From Paramoeba atlantica (taxonomy: Eukaryota > Protista > Discosea): DNA of 64,000 nt. Within the stretch, counting starts at the first letter, position 1. Each line of letters begins with the position of its first letter. Shown here one piece after another: positions 2,576-8,732 of this stretch. The stretch spans positions 186,001-250,000 of the forward strand of contig CDRNVI010000044.1 in assembly GCA_977017575.1 (NCBI GenBank), in the 5' to 3' direction. Under the pieces are notes generated by a model. It saw nothing but the letters and a program-made list of their open reading frames with translations, was not told the DNA's origin and did no database searches. The translations under genes were made by a program, and so were the position numbers.

Positions 2576-3008
2576 TTGTAGGTGAACCATCAGCTGGTTC
2601 GTTTCGAAAGTTTTCGAGAGTAGTTTCGGCATCAATCGTTCAAGAATCGTTCATTTTTTTCATTTTTTATCAATTTTTCACGTCTTTTTCATTGGTCTTT
2701 CCTCTCCCCTACTTAGTGTTTAATTTTGCCCAATTCTACTAAACACTAAATAGGGGGGGGATAAATTACTATACCCCCCCTGTTTATGAGTTCCCCCAAT
2801 TCTGGTACGTTTATGATTTCCTTTTTCTAAGGCGAATGTCTTTGTACACACTTTTCGCGAAGCGATTTTTGCACGGAACAAAAAGTCATAAAATTTCCAA
2901 CAACCGTAGGTCGGGCTGCTCTACGGACTCGCTTACTCAGCGGATAATCTTTTAAGCGCCCGTATCATTGCCACGGAGAACCCGCGGCGCGAAGCGCCGT
3001 GGGACATA

Positions 3009-3096
3009 CCTTAACCGAGTACAGCGAGTACGTACCGAGTACGTACTCGCTTGTACTCGCCGTACACGAGTACATACTCGCTGTACTCGGCTAAGG
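3009..3096. repeat. 88-bp foldback built from GAGTAC/GTACTC units (MITE-like)
   Basis: Arms 3009-3030 and 3075-3096 are complementary at 21/22 positions; internal perfect palindrome GAGTACGTACTC at 3037-3048. Confidence 0.8.
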
Positions 3097-3278
3097 CTCA
3101 CATGTCTTTACGACTACTAAAATGAAACCATGATCTCGAATCAACTCTCAAAGCTCTGTTAAGTGTTTTGCACTGTTTTTTACTTGTATCACACTCATTC
3201 ACACTTAGTACATACAAAAAAATGTACATATAAAAAAATTGTAATATGTAATTGTAAAAAAAATTATGATATGTATAA

Positions 3279-5603
3279 AAAAATATTTATCGAAGCATAC
3301 TACTGAATTCATTTTATCTCCCTGTCAAATACGGAATAGCTGTCGACACAGGGATTGACAGGGTAAAATCGGAGCACGTAATAATTAGTGTGCTCTACGT
3401 ACGTGAAAAAGAGTACGTCCTACCACCATTGTATTCTCCCAAACATCGAGCCTACGATGGGCTTACGATGAGTGCTCAACTTATACAATCTTTAAAAAAC
3501 AGTCTTGGAGAAAGCCGTGTGCTCAATTTGAAATTTTTGATGGTGGATGGCAGTGCGGTAAACCATGTTGCGCGTGGTCACTGCGAGGGATTCCTCAAAG
3601 TTTATATGACAAAATTTCACCGGTTGGACGGGACGACGAGGAAGCCTTAGCGCGTGGTATTTCAATACACGTTCCTTGCATCACACTTTTATCATGTATT
3701 GGGCATATGCTTAATAACGTATGCAAAAGTACATTAAAGTCGTACGAAGACCACTTGGCGTATTGTTGCTTCCGTTCATGAAATGCGAACTGCGGCTGCA
3801 CGAGGCACTGTTACTATCATGCAGAAGGACGAAACTTGCTTTTCTAAGCCAAAAAAGGGGGGTAATAACCGACCAGCCCGCATTCGCCAGGGGGGATCAA
3901 CCTGGGCAAACGTCCTGACACAGACCTCTCGTTCTCGGAAAGCTGGGCAGATATTTGTAAGCACGCTGGAAGACCGCCGTAGTTCCTCGACTAATGACCC
4001 TGTGTTTGAACTGGCCGCAAGCGAACGTACCATTGTTCACACGGATGGATGGAGAGGCAGCAATGCCTTGGGCAACAGACTCAACTATGGAACAGTAAAC
4101 CATCGCCGTCACTGGGTTGATCCTGTCACCGGGGTGCACACTCAGACTGCTGAGCGCATGAACGGAATGTTGAAAAAAGAAGTCCGCATGCAGGGCAACG
4201 GCACACTTGGTAGTGGAGTAGAAGCGCGAGACAACCGGTTGAAGTTCGCCGGAGAAGTTGTAAACGGCAAGCTGAAAAGAGGAGAACAAGACGGTCATGC
4301 CCTCCGTCGCCTGTTTCAAGACGTGAAGTGGTATTGCGAGAACGTGGAAATCGTTCTAGAATAAGTTTAAGCTAGCGTTTAAGATAACTCGAAGAGAGGT
4401 TTAAGGTGCTATAAATTTTATAAAAGTCAATATGACCAGTCAATATGAGATTTTTCTGAAAGTGTGAAATAATGCTTGACTTTGACCAATTATCCTACCG
4501 CTTGGCTCCTGAATTTAGAGTCGCAGCTGATGTGCTGCTTGAACAAACTAAATAGCGTGGTTCCTATCGAAATTGAAGAATTGTGTTCCAAGCTTGACGA
4601 GGTTCGAACGTTTGATGCAAAACACCGATTGTTTGAAAAGCACACTCCTCTCATATTGAAGGCTATCGAAAAGGTGAGAGCAACTCGGGTTGTGGTGACT
4701 CCGAAGCTGGGAGGCGTAACAAGATGGTGCGTGGACAAATTTACGTGCATGGATTTCTTGTCTAAAAATACATGAAATTAGTTGAAGCCTATGTTGTCGC
4801 TGAATGTGGGAAGGGCAAGCGAGCTTCAAAGTCCATGCTTCGCCTCGAAAAACTCTTAAACAGATACGGAGCTCTCACATTGCAGAAGCAGAGCGAATCC
4901 TTTTTAGAAGACTGTCGCATTCTTCATGAAAGTCTGATGAAATTTTCGGATCTTGTCGGATATCCCATGGCGACACATGTTGCTCCAACGTTGGAACGGT
5001 TGTTTGAGTATGGGCAGATGGAGGAAGCTCCGGAAGGTATGAATGATGCTCTAAGACACCATCAACGACGGTTAGAAAAAAATCATAATATGAATTTTTG
5101 GAAGCATGTTATGTGGTTTAGTCCTAAGTGGATTGTTCAATTTGCACCTCCATGTAACTGTCCACCAATTTTGGTTGACTTGGCGAATAACTTGTTTGTT
5201 ACTAGCTCTTCTCATTGCAACACGATTTTTTCAATATCGGAGGACGAGTGGAATGATTATGCGAGCTGCACTGACTATGGGTGGGATCCGCTTCAGCATG
5301 TAAACGAAAATGATTGGTGGATGAGCGTGGGACGCGACATGTTCCCCCAAGTTTTTCTTGGGGCGCAGCATTACATATGGACACCTCCACTAGTCACCAA
5401 GTGCGACTCTTGGTTCAGTCCTCGGGCATATGTATAACTCACGACAAGCTTCGCTCTCTTCGCAAGTCATCGCGGAGCAGGTTTTCATTCGTGGGAATGT
5501 TGACAAGCCGGACTATGTATTCTCAATGGAAAGCGAATCAGAAGATACTGGATTCGAAATAGAAAGTGATTCAGCGGAAAGCAGCGAAGCTGATGTAGCG
5601 TAA
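3279..5603 (+). mobile_element. Degraded hAT-superfamily DNA transposase, interrupted by insertions and frameshifts
   Basis: Colinear hAT motifs across frames: GIAVDTGID (D1 at 3345), FLMVDGSAVN (D2 at 3546), SCIGHMLNN (CxxH at 3695-3706), GGVTRW (4719-4727), YPMATHVAPTLERL (4961), WFSPK (LDPR-like), DWW...FP...A..Y..P...CDSWFS (5315-5419, catalytic E position reads D) and R.SLS...VFIRGN (5430-5603 frame). Confidence 0.75.
3743..4514 (+). mobile_element. Merlin/IS1595 (ISXO2-like) DDE transposase fragment nested in the hAT; ORF 3783-4364
   Basis: KDETCF (D at 3828), IVHTDGWRG (D at 4044), VNH..HWVDPVTGVHTQTAE (E at 4152); upstream in-frame KTTWRIVASVHE resembles the IS1595 KTAW helix. The boundaries rest on a candidate 9-bp target duplication (3734-3742 / 4515-4523). 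Confidence 0.85.
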
Positions 5604-6767
5604 GAAATGTTCTTATTTGTAGTGTTCTTATTTGTAGTATTCAGATGTCATAAGTTCTTTAGTCATTTTTAGTGCAATTTTGTAGTAAGTAGCCAGGGAT
5701 CAGCGACCCTGCGTATGATTTTTAGAGCACACATCCACAGCTCTGTTTCTTTATCCCCTCATCTTATCCAAGGGTTTCTGTGGTTTACCCTAGTGTCGCG
5801 AACACGTAATGTACGGGATTGAGAACCGGTGATTGTACATGTGTACAATATGTGTATAAGCTCACACATTAAAACATTCATAAATCTAAAATCTAATTAA
5901 CTTAGTGAGGTTTCTATTTTATTACATGATATTACCATGCTATGCTAGTGGCGGTACTAAAATCTCCTGGTCATCACCCTTTGTGGTTCATTGTGTTCAT
6001 TGGTTCGTGAACCATCAAGATATACTGCATCCCTAAAAGATACTGCATCCCTTGTGATATACGAGATCGTTAGAATAGCTACTCATATAAAAAAGGGCTG
6101 TGTCCAACCCGATTCCCCTAGATTTCCAAAGCTAAGAGGTCGACATCAAAATTTATTTTTTGCGAGTACATGCGACGTGATATACAACACTTTAGCTGAT
6201 AGGACGAACCAATTTGTTTCGCTGTAAGGATGGCTTGCGGGTAAAAGAGGATGGTAATTATGAGATGGTAACGATAAATATTTGCTTAAGCGCCCATAGA
6301 GTAATGGAGGGAGGACTCAGGTACAAAAGGCTGATCTGCACTTTCAAGAGAAAAATCTTCTAGATACATTTCTTCGCCAGAATCTACAGCAGTACTTTCA
6401 CCGAAGAACTCGATAGAGCGTCTCGGGGACGTAGGACGTTTCGGGGACAGAAATAATGAACTTCAGTAAAATCTGAAAGGATATGACTCTCAAAAAAACT
6501 ATAATGTTTTGCAAAAAAGTGCCAAAGGTCATTCATAAAAATTAATGAGAGCGGACGTATCTGCGGAATCGCTTCTTTTAGTAAATATTGGAACTCGTCA
6601 TGGTTTTGACTTCATTGGTCTCATTGTTTATCGCAGAGCTGAGTGATGACATGATATGTTATCAGGGTGGTGATACCACCCTCGCTAGAAAGAACTCTCC
6701 TCTAAGTTTATTGTAACAGATAATTGTATGGTCATATTCGTGTTGTTATATTCCTGTCCGTATAGTT

Positions 6768-6847
6768 CCTGATGAACATACATCCTGATGAACATACATC
6801 CTGATGAACATACATCCTGATGAACATACATCCTGATGAACATACAT
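6768..6847. repeat. Perfect tandem repeat, 16 bp x 5
   Basis: CCTGATGAACATACAT starts at 6768, 6784, 6800, 6816 and 6832. Confidence 0.95.
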
Positions 6848-6920
6848 GTATAGCTCTATCTCGATCGATATGTTTTCGCACAGTTCTGCGTGACCCTTTT
6901 CATGTTGTTCCTAGTGGCTT

Positions 6921-6970
6921 ACACAGTTCAGACTACACCTGTAAAACACAGTTCAGATCACACCTGTAAA
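6921..6970. repeat. 25-bp tandem duplication
   Basis: ACACAGTTCAGACTACACCTGTAAA / ACACAGTTCAGATCACACCTGTAAA, ending 35 nt before the IPI1-like ATG. Confidence 0.85.
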
Positions 6971-7004
6971 ACAAATTTTGTTGTACTGTAAACATTTTTT
7001 CAAA

Positions 7005-8732
7005 ATGACAAAGGCAAAGCGGAAGAATGCAGATTTTACTTCGCGAAAGAGAAAAATAGGAAAAACGAAGCTTGCTCCAGCTACAGCAACGAAAATTGAA
7101 ATCTCATCTGTAAAGCTGCATTTGAAGGACCCCTTTTCGAATGTTGCACAAGATAGTCCAGAGTCTGAAAAGACGTGGAAATTCTATCTTGTGAATTTGC
7201 GGCACTATTCCTATAAAGTGCAGTTGCAAGCGCTTACTAACATTCAGCGTACTTTGGTAGAAGGGTTAGATGCTCCAGTTGACTCGTTGGAGTCCTACGA
7301 ACTTCTAAGCGCAATTTCCTCTCATTTTGTTCATGAGAATTCTAGTATTCGTCGAAAAGCGGGAGCTATATTTCGTTTCTTATGTCAATCAGACGGATGT
7401 AATGCACCAATTTTTGCAACTCTTGTGCAGTCTTTGATCCGGACTGCGTTGTCAGATGCGAACAGCTCGATTCGCCTAGATGGCGTCTTTCTTTTGGATA
7501 GTTGGTTACACTTCACTTTAGATCCCCTCTGTTCCTCACGGCATAATGAAGCGCTTCAATGTTTTTGTTCCAATGCTCCAACGCTGTTATCTCTGCTATT
7601 GGTCCACAGTATAGGTTTTGCTGAGAAAGGAACTTGGGCGACACTCCGGTGTTTGAATCTTTTATTAGGAGTTAACCGCTTAGAAATTTTAGCTCTCGAA
7701 AGGATAGGAGAGTTGTTACGAATCCTTTCTTCGCGTTTTTGCGCAGATAGGAGTATTCAGGAGGTACAGACACCAATACATGAACAGAGAAAATTGTCTA
7801 ACTCTGTACGGAATATCACATGGTACGAGCTTTTGCTACGATGTTATTCTCACGCTAGTCGTTTACTGATGATTGAGGAAAGCTTCAATAAATCATTGTC
7901 CAAAAGAGCAATCAGCATATGGGATGCACTGCTAGAGTCGTGCTCCTCTGTTTTCTTGATATTGGATTCGACAGCCAGTAAGGCTAGAACCGCCCTCACT
8001 TTCCAAGCTCTTTTAATCAGAAGAAGTAATGCCGGACACAATTCACATTCTACTAATGACGAATCTTTCTCCATTACATTTTACAATACCCATCTATTTG
8101 AATGGAATTTACAGCAATGCGATCTTCAGACTCACAACATTGAAGTTTGGGATTTATTATTGATGTTTCTTTACGTGCATATTATAGCTTTTCCGTCCCC
8201 GCGTTCACACGACTCAGACGGTGCACTTACATGCTCTACAATTTTCTGCCAAAAATTGTGTGATTTGTGTGACAGATGTGACGGAATTTTGATCGTTAGT
8301 AAAATATTGAGGTATTGCGAAGAAAGAGTATTGAGTGTATTTCGAGAATGGGATGTGAGACACAGTGAACTTCCTTTTGGCCAATATGAGCTTATGCTGT
8401 ACGTTATGATTCCCAAAATTTTGATTAAGGTAGCATCTGCAGTTGACATCTCCAATATTGAATCAACTTACGTAAGTGCATCAGTTGATGAGAGCTTGAT
8501 GCATACAATTTCCGCGGTTTGTCACAGTAGCCTCAATATACTACGAAATTTCATTGTGCGATTTTGTGTTCCACCCTTTTGTGCCTACAGTGGAAATGAA
8601 CCTGAGGGTGAACGATGTTTGATAAATGCGTCTGCTTATGCTATGAAGAAAAGTCTCAAAGAAAGTGAATCTTTATTCTGTTCACCCAAACTGCTAGGCA
8701 ATAATAATACATTTGCCGAGATTTTTGAATAA
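7005..8732 (+). CDS. IPI1: IPI1/TEX10-like pre-rRNA processing protein (Rix1 complex)
   Basis: N-terminal KRKNADFTSRKRKIGKTK matches the Ipi1_N motif; HYSYKVQLQAL, followed by HEAT-like helices. First ATG at 7005. Confidence 0.7.
   Translation: MTKAKRKNADFTSRKRKIGKTKLAPATATKIEISSVKLHLKDPFSNVAQDSPESEKTWKFYLVNLRHYSYKVQLQALTNIQRTLVEGLDAPVDSLESYELLSAISSHFVHENSSIRRKAGAIFRFLCQSDGCNAPIFATLVQSLIRTALSDANSSIRLDGVFLLDSWLHFTLDPLCSSRHNEALQCFCSNAPTLLSLLLVHSIGFAEKGTWATLRCLNLLLGVNRLEILALERIGELLRILSSRFCADRSIQEVQTPIHEQRKLSNSVRNITWYELLLRCYSHASRLLMIEESFNKSLSKRAISIWDALLESCSSVFLILDSTASKARTALTFQALLIRRSNAGHNSHSTNDESFSITFYNTHLFEWNLQQCDLQTHNIEVWDLLLMFLYVHIIAFPSPRSHDSDGALTCSTIFCQKLCDLCDRCDGILIVSKILRYCEERVLSVFREWDVRHSELPFGQYELMLYVMIPKILIKVASAVDISNIESTYVSASVDESLMHTISAVCHSSLNILRNFIVRFCVPPFCAYSGNEPEGERCLINASAYAMKKSLKESESLFCSPKLLGNNNTFAEIFE

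Follow-up and report, generated by a model that had tools for sequence, protein, structure and literature searches.

The window analysed here (64,000 nt; positions 186,001–250,000 of the forward strand of contig CDRNVI010000044.1, assembly GCA_977017575.1, deposited under Paramoeba atlantica) carries 26 open reading frames (ORFs) of at least 200 amino acids (aa), all of them on the + strand and intronless, with housekeeping domains that include a mitochondrial carrier, ABC-F, NOB1, an FtsH-type protease, AMP deaminase, Nrap and Cox11. A repeat-rich gap of 6 kb separates the carrier gene (nt 72–1025) from the gene at nt 6978–8732, and within it, in sense orientation, lie the remains of a transposase gene, split into five + strand ORF pieces (nt 3330–5603) that an initial annotation of the sequence had joined into a hAT transposase. 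The analysis described below gives a probability of about 90% that nt 3005–6175 (+) represent a dead, non-autonomous and now immobile DNA transposon that belongs to a very divergent, multi-copy lineage of the hAT superfamily.

Transposase homology of the relic

The coordinates of the five pieces and the peptides quoted from them in the initial annotation were all verified against the window sequence and its three-frame translations. The pieces are collinear with transposases of 691–705 aa from the same sample/assembly, with which they share 44–66% identity. One of these, P0002 (691 aa), was the top non-self match (E = 9e-55) when the piece at nt 4772–5437 was searched with phmmer against 1.84 billion protein cluster representatives, a search that matched only 46 proteins. 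A tblastn search of the window with P0002 gave four matches in collinear order: aa 143–232 at nt 3330–3599 (66% identity), aa 229–283 at nt 3587–3751 (56%), aa 351–437 at nt 4512–4769 (47%) and aa 400–626 at nt 4655–5332, true homology in the last case being confined to aa 438–626 (nt 4772–5332). The tail at nt 5430–5603 can be aligned to the C-terminus of the family, as represented by P0003, P0043, P0047 and others. Residues 1–142 and 284–350 of P0002 had no counterpart in the window by tblastn, the latter also after removal of the insert described below. Judged from these alignments, the similarity of the pieces to the transposase family is far above chance.

The joined pieces show the motif order Asp, Asp, CxxH, RW, WW-FP and C-terminal tail, and the proposal that they assemble in this order into a hAT relic was borne out. 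The first and second Asp are encoded by GAC (nt 3345–3347) and GAT (nt 3546–3548), the CxxH motif is CIGH (nt 3695–3706, with TGT from nt 3695), TRW lies at nt 4719–4727, and the C-D pair is TGC GAC (nt 5402–5407). The window copy keeps every catalytic and motif residue that is invariant in the family.

The window sequence is backed by exact contigs of public sequencing runs (X1–X4), whose contigs and reads were compared with it. The same locus in another assembly (ERZ24900291:ctg3913l) differs by a single G at nt 5329, within a GGG run, in 5,089 bp. The extra or missing G shifts the predicted protein (P0001 versus the window ORF), so that homopolymer polishing affects ORF calls in this genome.

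Relatives of the family are rare in public data, amounting to the 46 representatives and one locus from a JGI metagenome (L010); homologue searches with P0028 or with the family alignment returned only 3–4 proteins. A scan of IMG/VR found no relative, and giant viruses as a vehicle for the family are unsupported by that collection.

Structure and lesions of the window copy

The features of the relic are collected in Table 1. The left terminus was placed at nt 3005 because nt 3005–3040 match, at 100% identity, the left end (nt 4657–4692) of an element in locus L012 that belongs to the same subfamily. The flanks of the two copies diverge exactly ahead of CATAC, and the reads show loose ends before nt 3004 and high depth at the left terminal repeat. 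This repeat and the inverted copy that follows it form a foldback rich in GAGTAC/GTACTC motifs (inverted repeat I1, with 27-nt arms that are 93% complementary; a local alignment pairs nt 3003–3043 with nt 3061–3106), and read depth at nt 3053–3106 is 3–9 times that of the flanks. Whether the foldback (nt 3005–3106) might be a separate miniature element was also considered; since it lacks a target site duplication (TSD) of its own, it was treated as the left end plus an inverted duplication. In full elements, ~840 bp lie between the terminus and the first Asp. The other assembly's contig of this locus begins at nt 3305, immediately after the AT-rich spacer.

Table 1. Features of the hAT relic and of the repeat unit nested in it, in window coordinates.
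Feature	Position (nt)	Strand	Remarks
Left terminal inverted repeat	3005–3052	+	Terminus reads CATACCTTAACCGAGTAC...
Inverted copy of terminal repeat	3053–3106	.	Pairs with 3005–3052 as a ~100-bp foldback
AT-rich spacer	3107–3304	.	Place of the missing zinc-finger/N-terminal ~140 codons
Transposase piece 1	3330–3599	+	Catalytic Asp 1 (3345) and Asp 2 (3546); P0002 aa 143–232
Transposase piece 2	3587–3751	+	CxxH motif (CIGH, 3695–3706); P0002 aa 229–283
Frameshift 1	3600–3605	+	One base fewer than the natural variant
Direct repeat, left copy	3751–3759	+	Imperfect 9-bp repeat CCACTTGGC flanking the nested unit
Merlin/IS1595-like repeat unit	3760–4497	+	~738 bp; open 193-aa ORF (3783–4364) with DDE domain
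Direct repeat, right copy	4498–4506	+	CCGCTTGGC; 8/9 bases match 3751–3759
Transposase piece 3	4512–4769	+	End of helical insertion domain, GGVTRW motif; P0002 aa 351–437
Frameshift 2	4768–4771	+	Two bases more than the natural variant
Transposase piece 4	4772–5422	+	WW, FP and C-D motifs; third catalytic position Asp (GAC, 5405–5407)
Frameshift 3	5417–5430	+	Between ...CDSWFS and VLGHMYNSRQ...; frames compared with P0055 CDSWLSVLGYMYSSRQASL
Transposase piece 5	5430–5603	+	C-terminal tail (RQASL...FIRGN), acidic tail, stop codon
3' non-coding part	5604–6175	+	Right terminal repeat lost beyond 6175

The reading frame is interrupted three times. Contigs of runs X2 and X4 have an additional A behind nt 3602, with which the frame, translated by script, continues as FLKVIYDKISPVG and matches P0002. 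One X1 contig, at about half the depth, omits two bases at nt 4770, and without these the scripted frame reads FLSKNMKLVEAYV, matching FLAKNMDTVSAFV in P0002. At the third frameshift (~5420), no indel variant was present in the read-derived contigs. Frameshifts 1 and 2 are thus real in the window haplotype, where they are backed by exact X1 contigs, yet polymorphic. A further haplotype or strain polymorphism was seen at nt 3705, where six additional bases (TACATG) interrupt the conserved CxxH-LN motif in contigs of X1 and X4.

These results change the reconstruction that had been proposed for the gene. The frameshifts suspected near nt 4770 and 5430 were both located, and a further one lies at ~3602, within a segment (nt 3579–3658) that was to have been spliced out but is coding and homologous (IYDKISPVG... 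against IYDQISPIG in P0002); the defect there is a 1-bp frameshift. Removal of nt 3743–4523 does not restore continuity either, as ~62 codons are still missing and the frame changes. The transposase is therefore 'reconstructable' only in part, with ~140 N-terminal and ~62 internal codons gone.

On the right, the element is cut ~21 bp short of its terminus, since nt 6146–6175 match the sequence immediately inside the right terminus of the L012 element (nt 8558–8587), where ~21 further bases reach the terminus and the TSD. X2 contigs run past nt 6175 as GTACGTACTCG..., and another repeat starts at nt 6177. Self-complementarity searches of the window found no terminal inverted repeat (TIR) pair for the hAT element because the right terminus is missing. 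The match to L012 over nt 4910–5600 is 79%, and an internally deleted relative joins nt 4875 to nt 5922 and extends to nt 6175.

Family copies elsewhere in the genome

The long contigs with family members all derive from ENA analysis ERZ24900291, in which ctg3913l is the window locus. Copies occur on nine or more further contigs of this assembly and fall into three deeply diverged subfamilies. Subfamily 1 (L001, nt 5591–8540; L007, nt 3699–7003) has a perfect 32-bp TIR with termini CATACCCCTGCC...GGCAGGGGTATG and TSDs of ATTCTA (L001) and TATTTT (L007). Subfamily 2 comprises L006 (nt 4745–7898) and an internally deleted derivative, L009 (nt 3093–5276); its termini are CATACATCTCC...GGAGATGTATG, with 63-bp inverted repeats of GTAC motifs and TSDs of TATTAT (L006) and ATTACT (L009). 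Subfamily 3, to which the window copy belongs, is defined by L012, with the terminus CATACCTTAACC... and the 6-bp TSD TTACTT. The window subfamily shares ~50% amino acid and 66–76% DNA identity with subfamilies 1 and 2; in a nucleotide comparison with the L001 and L006 elements, the window copy gave coding matches of 66–80% only and has no ends in common with them.

The termini of the family are CATAC...GTATG, the TIRs are 32–63 bp long, and the subterminal repeats are GTAC-rich or GGGTAA-rich. The TIRs of hAT elements start with CA or TA, and those of this family begin with CA. Each of the five insertions (L001, L007, L006, L009 and L012) is flanked by a perfect, AT-rich 6-bp TSD that cannot be extended to 8 bp. 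The initial annotation had proposed a search for intact copies with TIRs and 8-bp TSDs; intact ORFs and TIRs were found, and the duplications differ from the classical hAT length. Groups of hAT elements with TSDs of 5, 6 and 7 bp have already been accepted (PMC12730594). Because some copies are 97–99% identical and have intact ORFs (P0052, P0055 and P0060, 695–776 aa), the family is, as read from these sequences, recently mobile in this genome.

Two loci show further rearrangement. In L004, a DDE_Tnp_4 (Harbinger/PIF-type) ORF (nt 4316–4939, –) is arranged head-to-head with an intact hAT ORF (nt 5001–7118, +) whose element lacks its left end, and a Harbinger element may thus have inserted into the 5' part of the hAT copy. 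In L011 (nt 5001–5600), P0005 combines an HTH_23/HTH_28-type N-terminus with part of a hAT C-terminus (58% identity to the window piece), and is probably a chimera of two decayed transposons.

Evidence for membership of the hAT superfamily

Matches to known transposases came from a family profile and from predicted structures. A profile of the family searched against the PDB matched only the Hermes transposase (C-terminus, E ~0.001). With an AlphaFold model of P0047 (predicted local distance difference test score, pLDDT, 76), the top 12 Foldseek matches in the PDB were all Hermes (E = 3.5e-8), and those in Swiss-Prot were Ac, hobo, RICESLEEPER, DAYSLEEPER and ZBED proteins. The model of P0055 (pLDDT 76; top Hermes E = 4.3e-7) was aligned to Hermes by VIA-align over 448/476 residues with a Z-score of 25.4, the next folds being the P element (Z 9.6) and integrases and ISCth4 (~9); among AFDB clusters it matched only hAT, BED and DUF659 entries, at 9–14% identity. 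P0055 is ~50% identical to the window relic, and a Hermes-type fold was assigned to the relic because of its 44–66% identity to P0002 and P0055. In the models, an RNase H core is split by a large all-helical insertion domain and followed by a C-terminal hAT region. At the level of domain profiles, PF05699 (Dimer_Tnp_hAT; cutoff 21.4 bits) scored above cutoff in four more distant environmental relatives (P0047, 26.9 bits; P0028, 24.9; P0032, 24.5; P0043, 24.0).

An alignment of five diverged full-length members (A4) has the invariant residues D141, D208, C258, H261, G411, G412, T414, R415, W416, C643 and D644. According to the model, D141, D208, C258, H261, R415, W416 and D644 occupy the strands and helix expected for them, with D141 and D208 at the ends of predicted beta-strands and D644 on a helix after the insertion domain. 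The CxxH and RW signature motifs follow the second Asp and precede the third acidic residue. Profile alignment places the C-D-S of the family over the S-E-R of Hermes, with the family Asp on the Hermes Glu; from the alignment ranges and the residue numbering of Hermes, we take D644 to correspond to E572, and D141 and D208 to D180 and D248. The Asp in the window copy had been read as a mutated catalytic Glu, and the copy as probably dead on that account. It is found, however, in all five A4 members and nearly all members aligned in a second family alignment (A1), and its invariance makes it a family trait; the first two Asp are likewise present and invariant, so that the family has D-D-D in place of the classical hAT triad D-D-E. 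Catalysis by such a triad is plausible on sequence grounds, as an acidic residue is kept at the third position. The copy is dead through its other lesions.

Upstream of the core, the full-length proteins P0047, P0049, P0052 and P0060 have a Cys/His cluster. Pfam zf-BED gave no match in full-length members, and P0049 showed only a weak match to zf-C2H2_12 (E = 8e-4). From sequence and modelled structure together, the assignment of the family to the hAT superfamily is well supported, at a great distance from described members.

A nested Merlin/IS1595-like unit and adjacent repeats

The hAT coding sequence is interrupted by a foreign unit between pieces 2 and 3. Read depth over the unit is ~260, compared with 50–140 in its flanks, and loose ends occur before nt 3759 and behind nt 4487–4497, which together mark nt 3760–4497 as a discrete, multi-copy unit. 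The copies of the 9-bp direct repeat, a putative TSD, abut the boundaries that the reads set independently. An X2 contig covers nt 3330–3788, and so includes the left junction; the insertion is therefore common to strains or haplotypes. The possibility that the unit is filler DNA from break repair was disfavoured, since other copies share its boundaries.

The product of the ORF gives significant matches that fall below the curated cutoffs both for Pfam DDE_Tnp_IS1595 (E = 2.1e-5, 25 bits; cutoff 27) and for NCBIfam IS1595 (E = 9.5e-11, 42 bits; cutoff 75). Candidate D, D and E residues are visible, and a search with this Merlin ORF found two short relatives. Merlin elements have 8–9 bp TSDs and TIRs ending in GG (PMC8101967); an inverted-repeat search of the window revealed no TIRs for nt 3760–4497, and the unit has no terminal GG...CC. 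By its sequence, the unit may represent a compact, still-coding Merlin lineage. It stands where ~62 hAT codons are missing, and its excision still leaves a gap and a change of frame.

Other repeats crowd the gap. Contig depth is 430–840 at nt 5636–5863 and 6177–6300, against 50–200 around them, with loose ends at nt 5748 and 6177; these are dispersed repeats that abut the 3' portion of the relic or lie inside it. A perfect 16-bp tandem repeat (nt 6767–6847, 5.1 copies, unit TCCTGATGAACATACA) shortly precedes the gene at nt 6978, and each of its units includes a CATAC pentamer. Upstream of the element, at nt 2706–2786, there are short hairpins on G7-8/C7 runs (TAAATAGGGGGGGG / CCCCCCCTGTTTA), and similar G-run/C-run inverted repeats lie beside the hAT copy of L001 (nt 5392–5586); they may constitute another miniature repeat family.

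Host lineage

Four public runs, representing up to three samples, contain the same locus. The ribosomal protein eL36 encoded on a sister contig had its best match in the T. brucei ribosome (72 bits, against 67 for the next). This match and the same-strand, intronless gene arrays weakly suggest, at the level of sequence, a kinetoplastid-like euglenozoan host; the kinetoplastid-like character that had been proposed for the genome is suggested by gene order and eL36, and its identity as a kinetoplastid is not confirmed. A search of the ESM Atlas with an ABC-F gene was uninformative on taxonomy. A core motif of the spliced leader was absent from the window and the loci with family copies, which is uninformative about the host, and Rfam gave no match on the whole window.

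The searchable literature reports no DNA transposon but Merlin, which lacks clear ends, from kinetoplastids, and papers up to 2025 describe trypanosomatids as being without class II elements (PMC8101967, PMC12278014). No paper on hAT elements in kinetoplastids was found in that literature.

Interpretation

Although its left terminus and the full set of catalytic motifs are preserved, the relic carries five lesions. About 140 N-terminal codons, among them those of the Cys/His DNA-binding region, are lost; the Merlin/IS1595-like unit stands where ~62 internal codons are missing; and the three frameshifts make up the remainder. Besides these, the last ~21 bp of the right TIR are gone. Given the truncation, the insertion with deletion and the frameshifts, the relic cannot make transposase, and it is probably not mobilisable in trans, because its right terminus is missing. 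Transcription, if any, is probably passive read-through. Its final decay looks recent, since two of the frameshifts are polymorphic and ~500 codons are free of in-frame stops. By analogy with hAT biochemistry, cut-and-paste movement of intact family members would leave hairpins on the DNA that flanks the excised element, and a target cut with a 6-bp stagger would account for the length of the TSD.

Several observations weigh against this reading. Pfam, at E values up to 1, found no hAT match in any of the five window pieces, and Dimer_Tnp_hAT reached only 12.2 bits in P0055, an intact copy from the same genome, so that the profile evidence first hoped for from the joined protein comes from the four relatives that pass the cutoff. 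With Pfam silent or weak on the same-genome copies, the hAT assignment depends on homology through intermediates and on modelled structures. Neither the third catalytic residue nor the length of the TSD is that of a classical hAT element. The loci examined included no autonomous copy of the subfamily to which the window copy belongs, and it is an inference that the foldback, which lacks a TSD of its own, is continuous with the ORF remnant. The Merlin unit, moreover, coincides with a 62-codon deletion.

The departures from the hAT definition could mean that the family has its place in a different superfamily of the RNase H type, such as IS3EU, Dada or a P-like one, its hAT motifs being convergent, and the silence of Pfam on the same-genome copies would agree with that. 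This is nevertheless very improbable: the full-length structure matches Hermes alone, with a Z-score of 25 where the P element reaches 9.6 and integrases and ISCth4 ~9, every Swiss-Prot and AFDB match is hAT, BED or DUF659, PF05699 passes its cutoff in four relatives, and 6-bp TSDs fall within the range of the accepted 5-, 6- and 7-bp groups (PMC12730594). Still less probable is that the breaks are assembly errors or programmed frameshifts, and that the locus gives rise to a functional protein of hAT origin, which might be domesticated. Variant contigs do lack two of the three frameshifts, the stop-free stretch is long, and the homopolymer G difference from the other assembly alters the frame. 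Exact X1 contigs, however, back the window at nt 3602, and half of the depth backs it at nt 4770; the N-terminal and internal codons are absent, the 738-bp foreign unit sits in the ORF with its junction also in X2, and the variant form has the 6-bp insertion within the CxxH-LN motif.

The least probable of the alternatives is that the contig or the element is foreign, either as contaminant DNA or as a very recent horizontal arrival limited to this locus. The extreme rarity of the family in public data, its absence from IMG/VR and the environmental origin of the closest non-self relatives would be in keeping with this idea. Yet the relic is embedded among the housekeeping genes of a 64-kb same-strand array, the locus recurs in four runs, and the assembly has copies from three deeply diverged subfamilies on nine or more further contigs. 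An ancient horizontal origin of the family as a whole would be compatible with these data. The preferred reading is thus that of a decayed hAT transposon in host DNA.

The relic itself is an ordinary dead transposon copy, and the family a rare hAT variant. A tentative proposal, to which we give slightly less than even odds, is that the relic marks a hAT lineage not described before, one that branches deeply, has a D-D-D triad and 6-bp TSDs, and remains active in a kinetoplastid or close euglenozoan. If true, it would be the first class II element there to combine intact transposase genes with defined ends and target duplications that are still fresh, and it could provide a transposon tool native to the group and an experiment of nature on Glu-to-Asp replacement in hAT catalysis. 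Should the host prove to be a kinetoplastid, the Merlin-only picture would be altered by a hAT family whose genes are intact, whose TIRs are perfect and whose TSDs are fresh, a notable addition to the mobilome. The family also offers a defined autonomous/non-autonomous pair for mobility tests, and work on hAT mechanism would find simple variables in its 6-bp TSD and in the Asp that invariably takes the place of the Hermes Glu. The silence of Pfam on the same-genome copies illustrates how such elements evade routine annotation. The value of the relic lies mainly in its being a dated fossil, in which the sequence of decay and its recency can be read from the nested insertion of Merlin type and the frameshifts that are still polymorphic.

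Comparison with known systems

The closest structural counterpart of the family is Hermes of the house fly (PDB 2BW3, 4D1Q, 6DWW and 8EDG), with which it shares the overall fold over ~450 residues (Z 25), the order Asp, Asp, CxxH and RW, the helical insertion domain, the C-terminal hAT region and termini that begin with CA. The two are only 11–14% identical, however, and the third catalytic residue is Asp in the family but Glu in Hermes. The TSD is 6 bp rather than 8 bp, the TIRs are longer (32–63 bp) with arrays of GTAC-type palindromic subterminal repeats, and the family lacks a BED finger recognisable by Pfam.

In TSD length the family resembles the hAT6 group, whose elements also have 6-bp TSDs; as far as the available description goes, that group was reported within an animal, Blackjack-related lineage (Kapitonov and Jurka 2007, cited in PMC12730594), and the comparison is by description only. 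No report of a D-D-D triad was found for hAT6. The nested unit is like the Merlin elements of Bodo saltans and Perkinsela (PMC8101967) in its short DDE_Tnp_IS1595-type ORF and in having no clear TIRs, and differs in that their terminal GG...CC is not seen and that it scores below the curated cutoffs.

As a system, the family is reminiscent of maize Ac/Ds, in which an autonomous element is accompanied by deletion derivatives that keep its ends; the corresponding derivatives here are L009, L012 and an X2 contig with the joins 3662>4765 and 4875>5922. Nested insertions in decayed copies are a further point of likeness, while the host kingdom, the length of the TSD and the third catalytic residue set the two apart.

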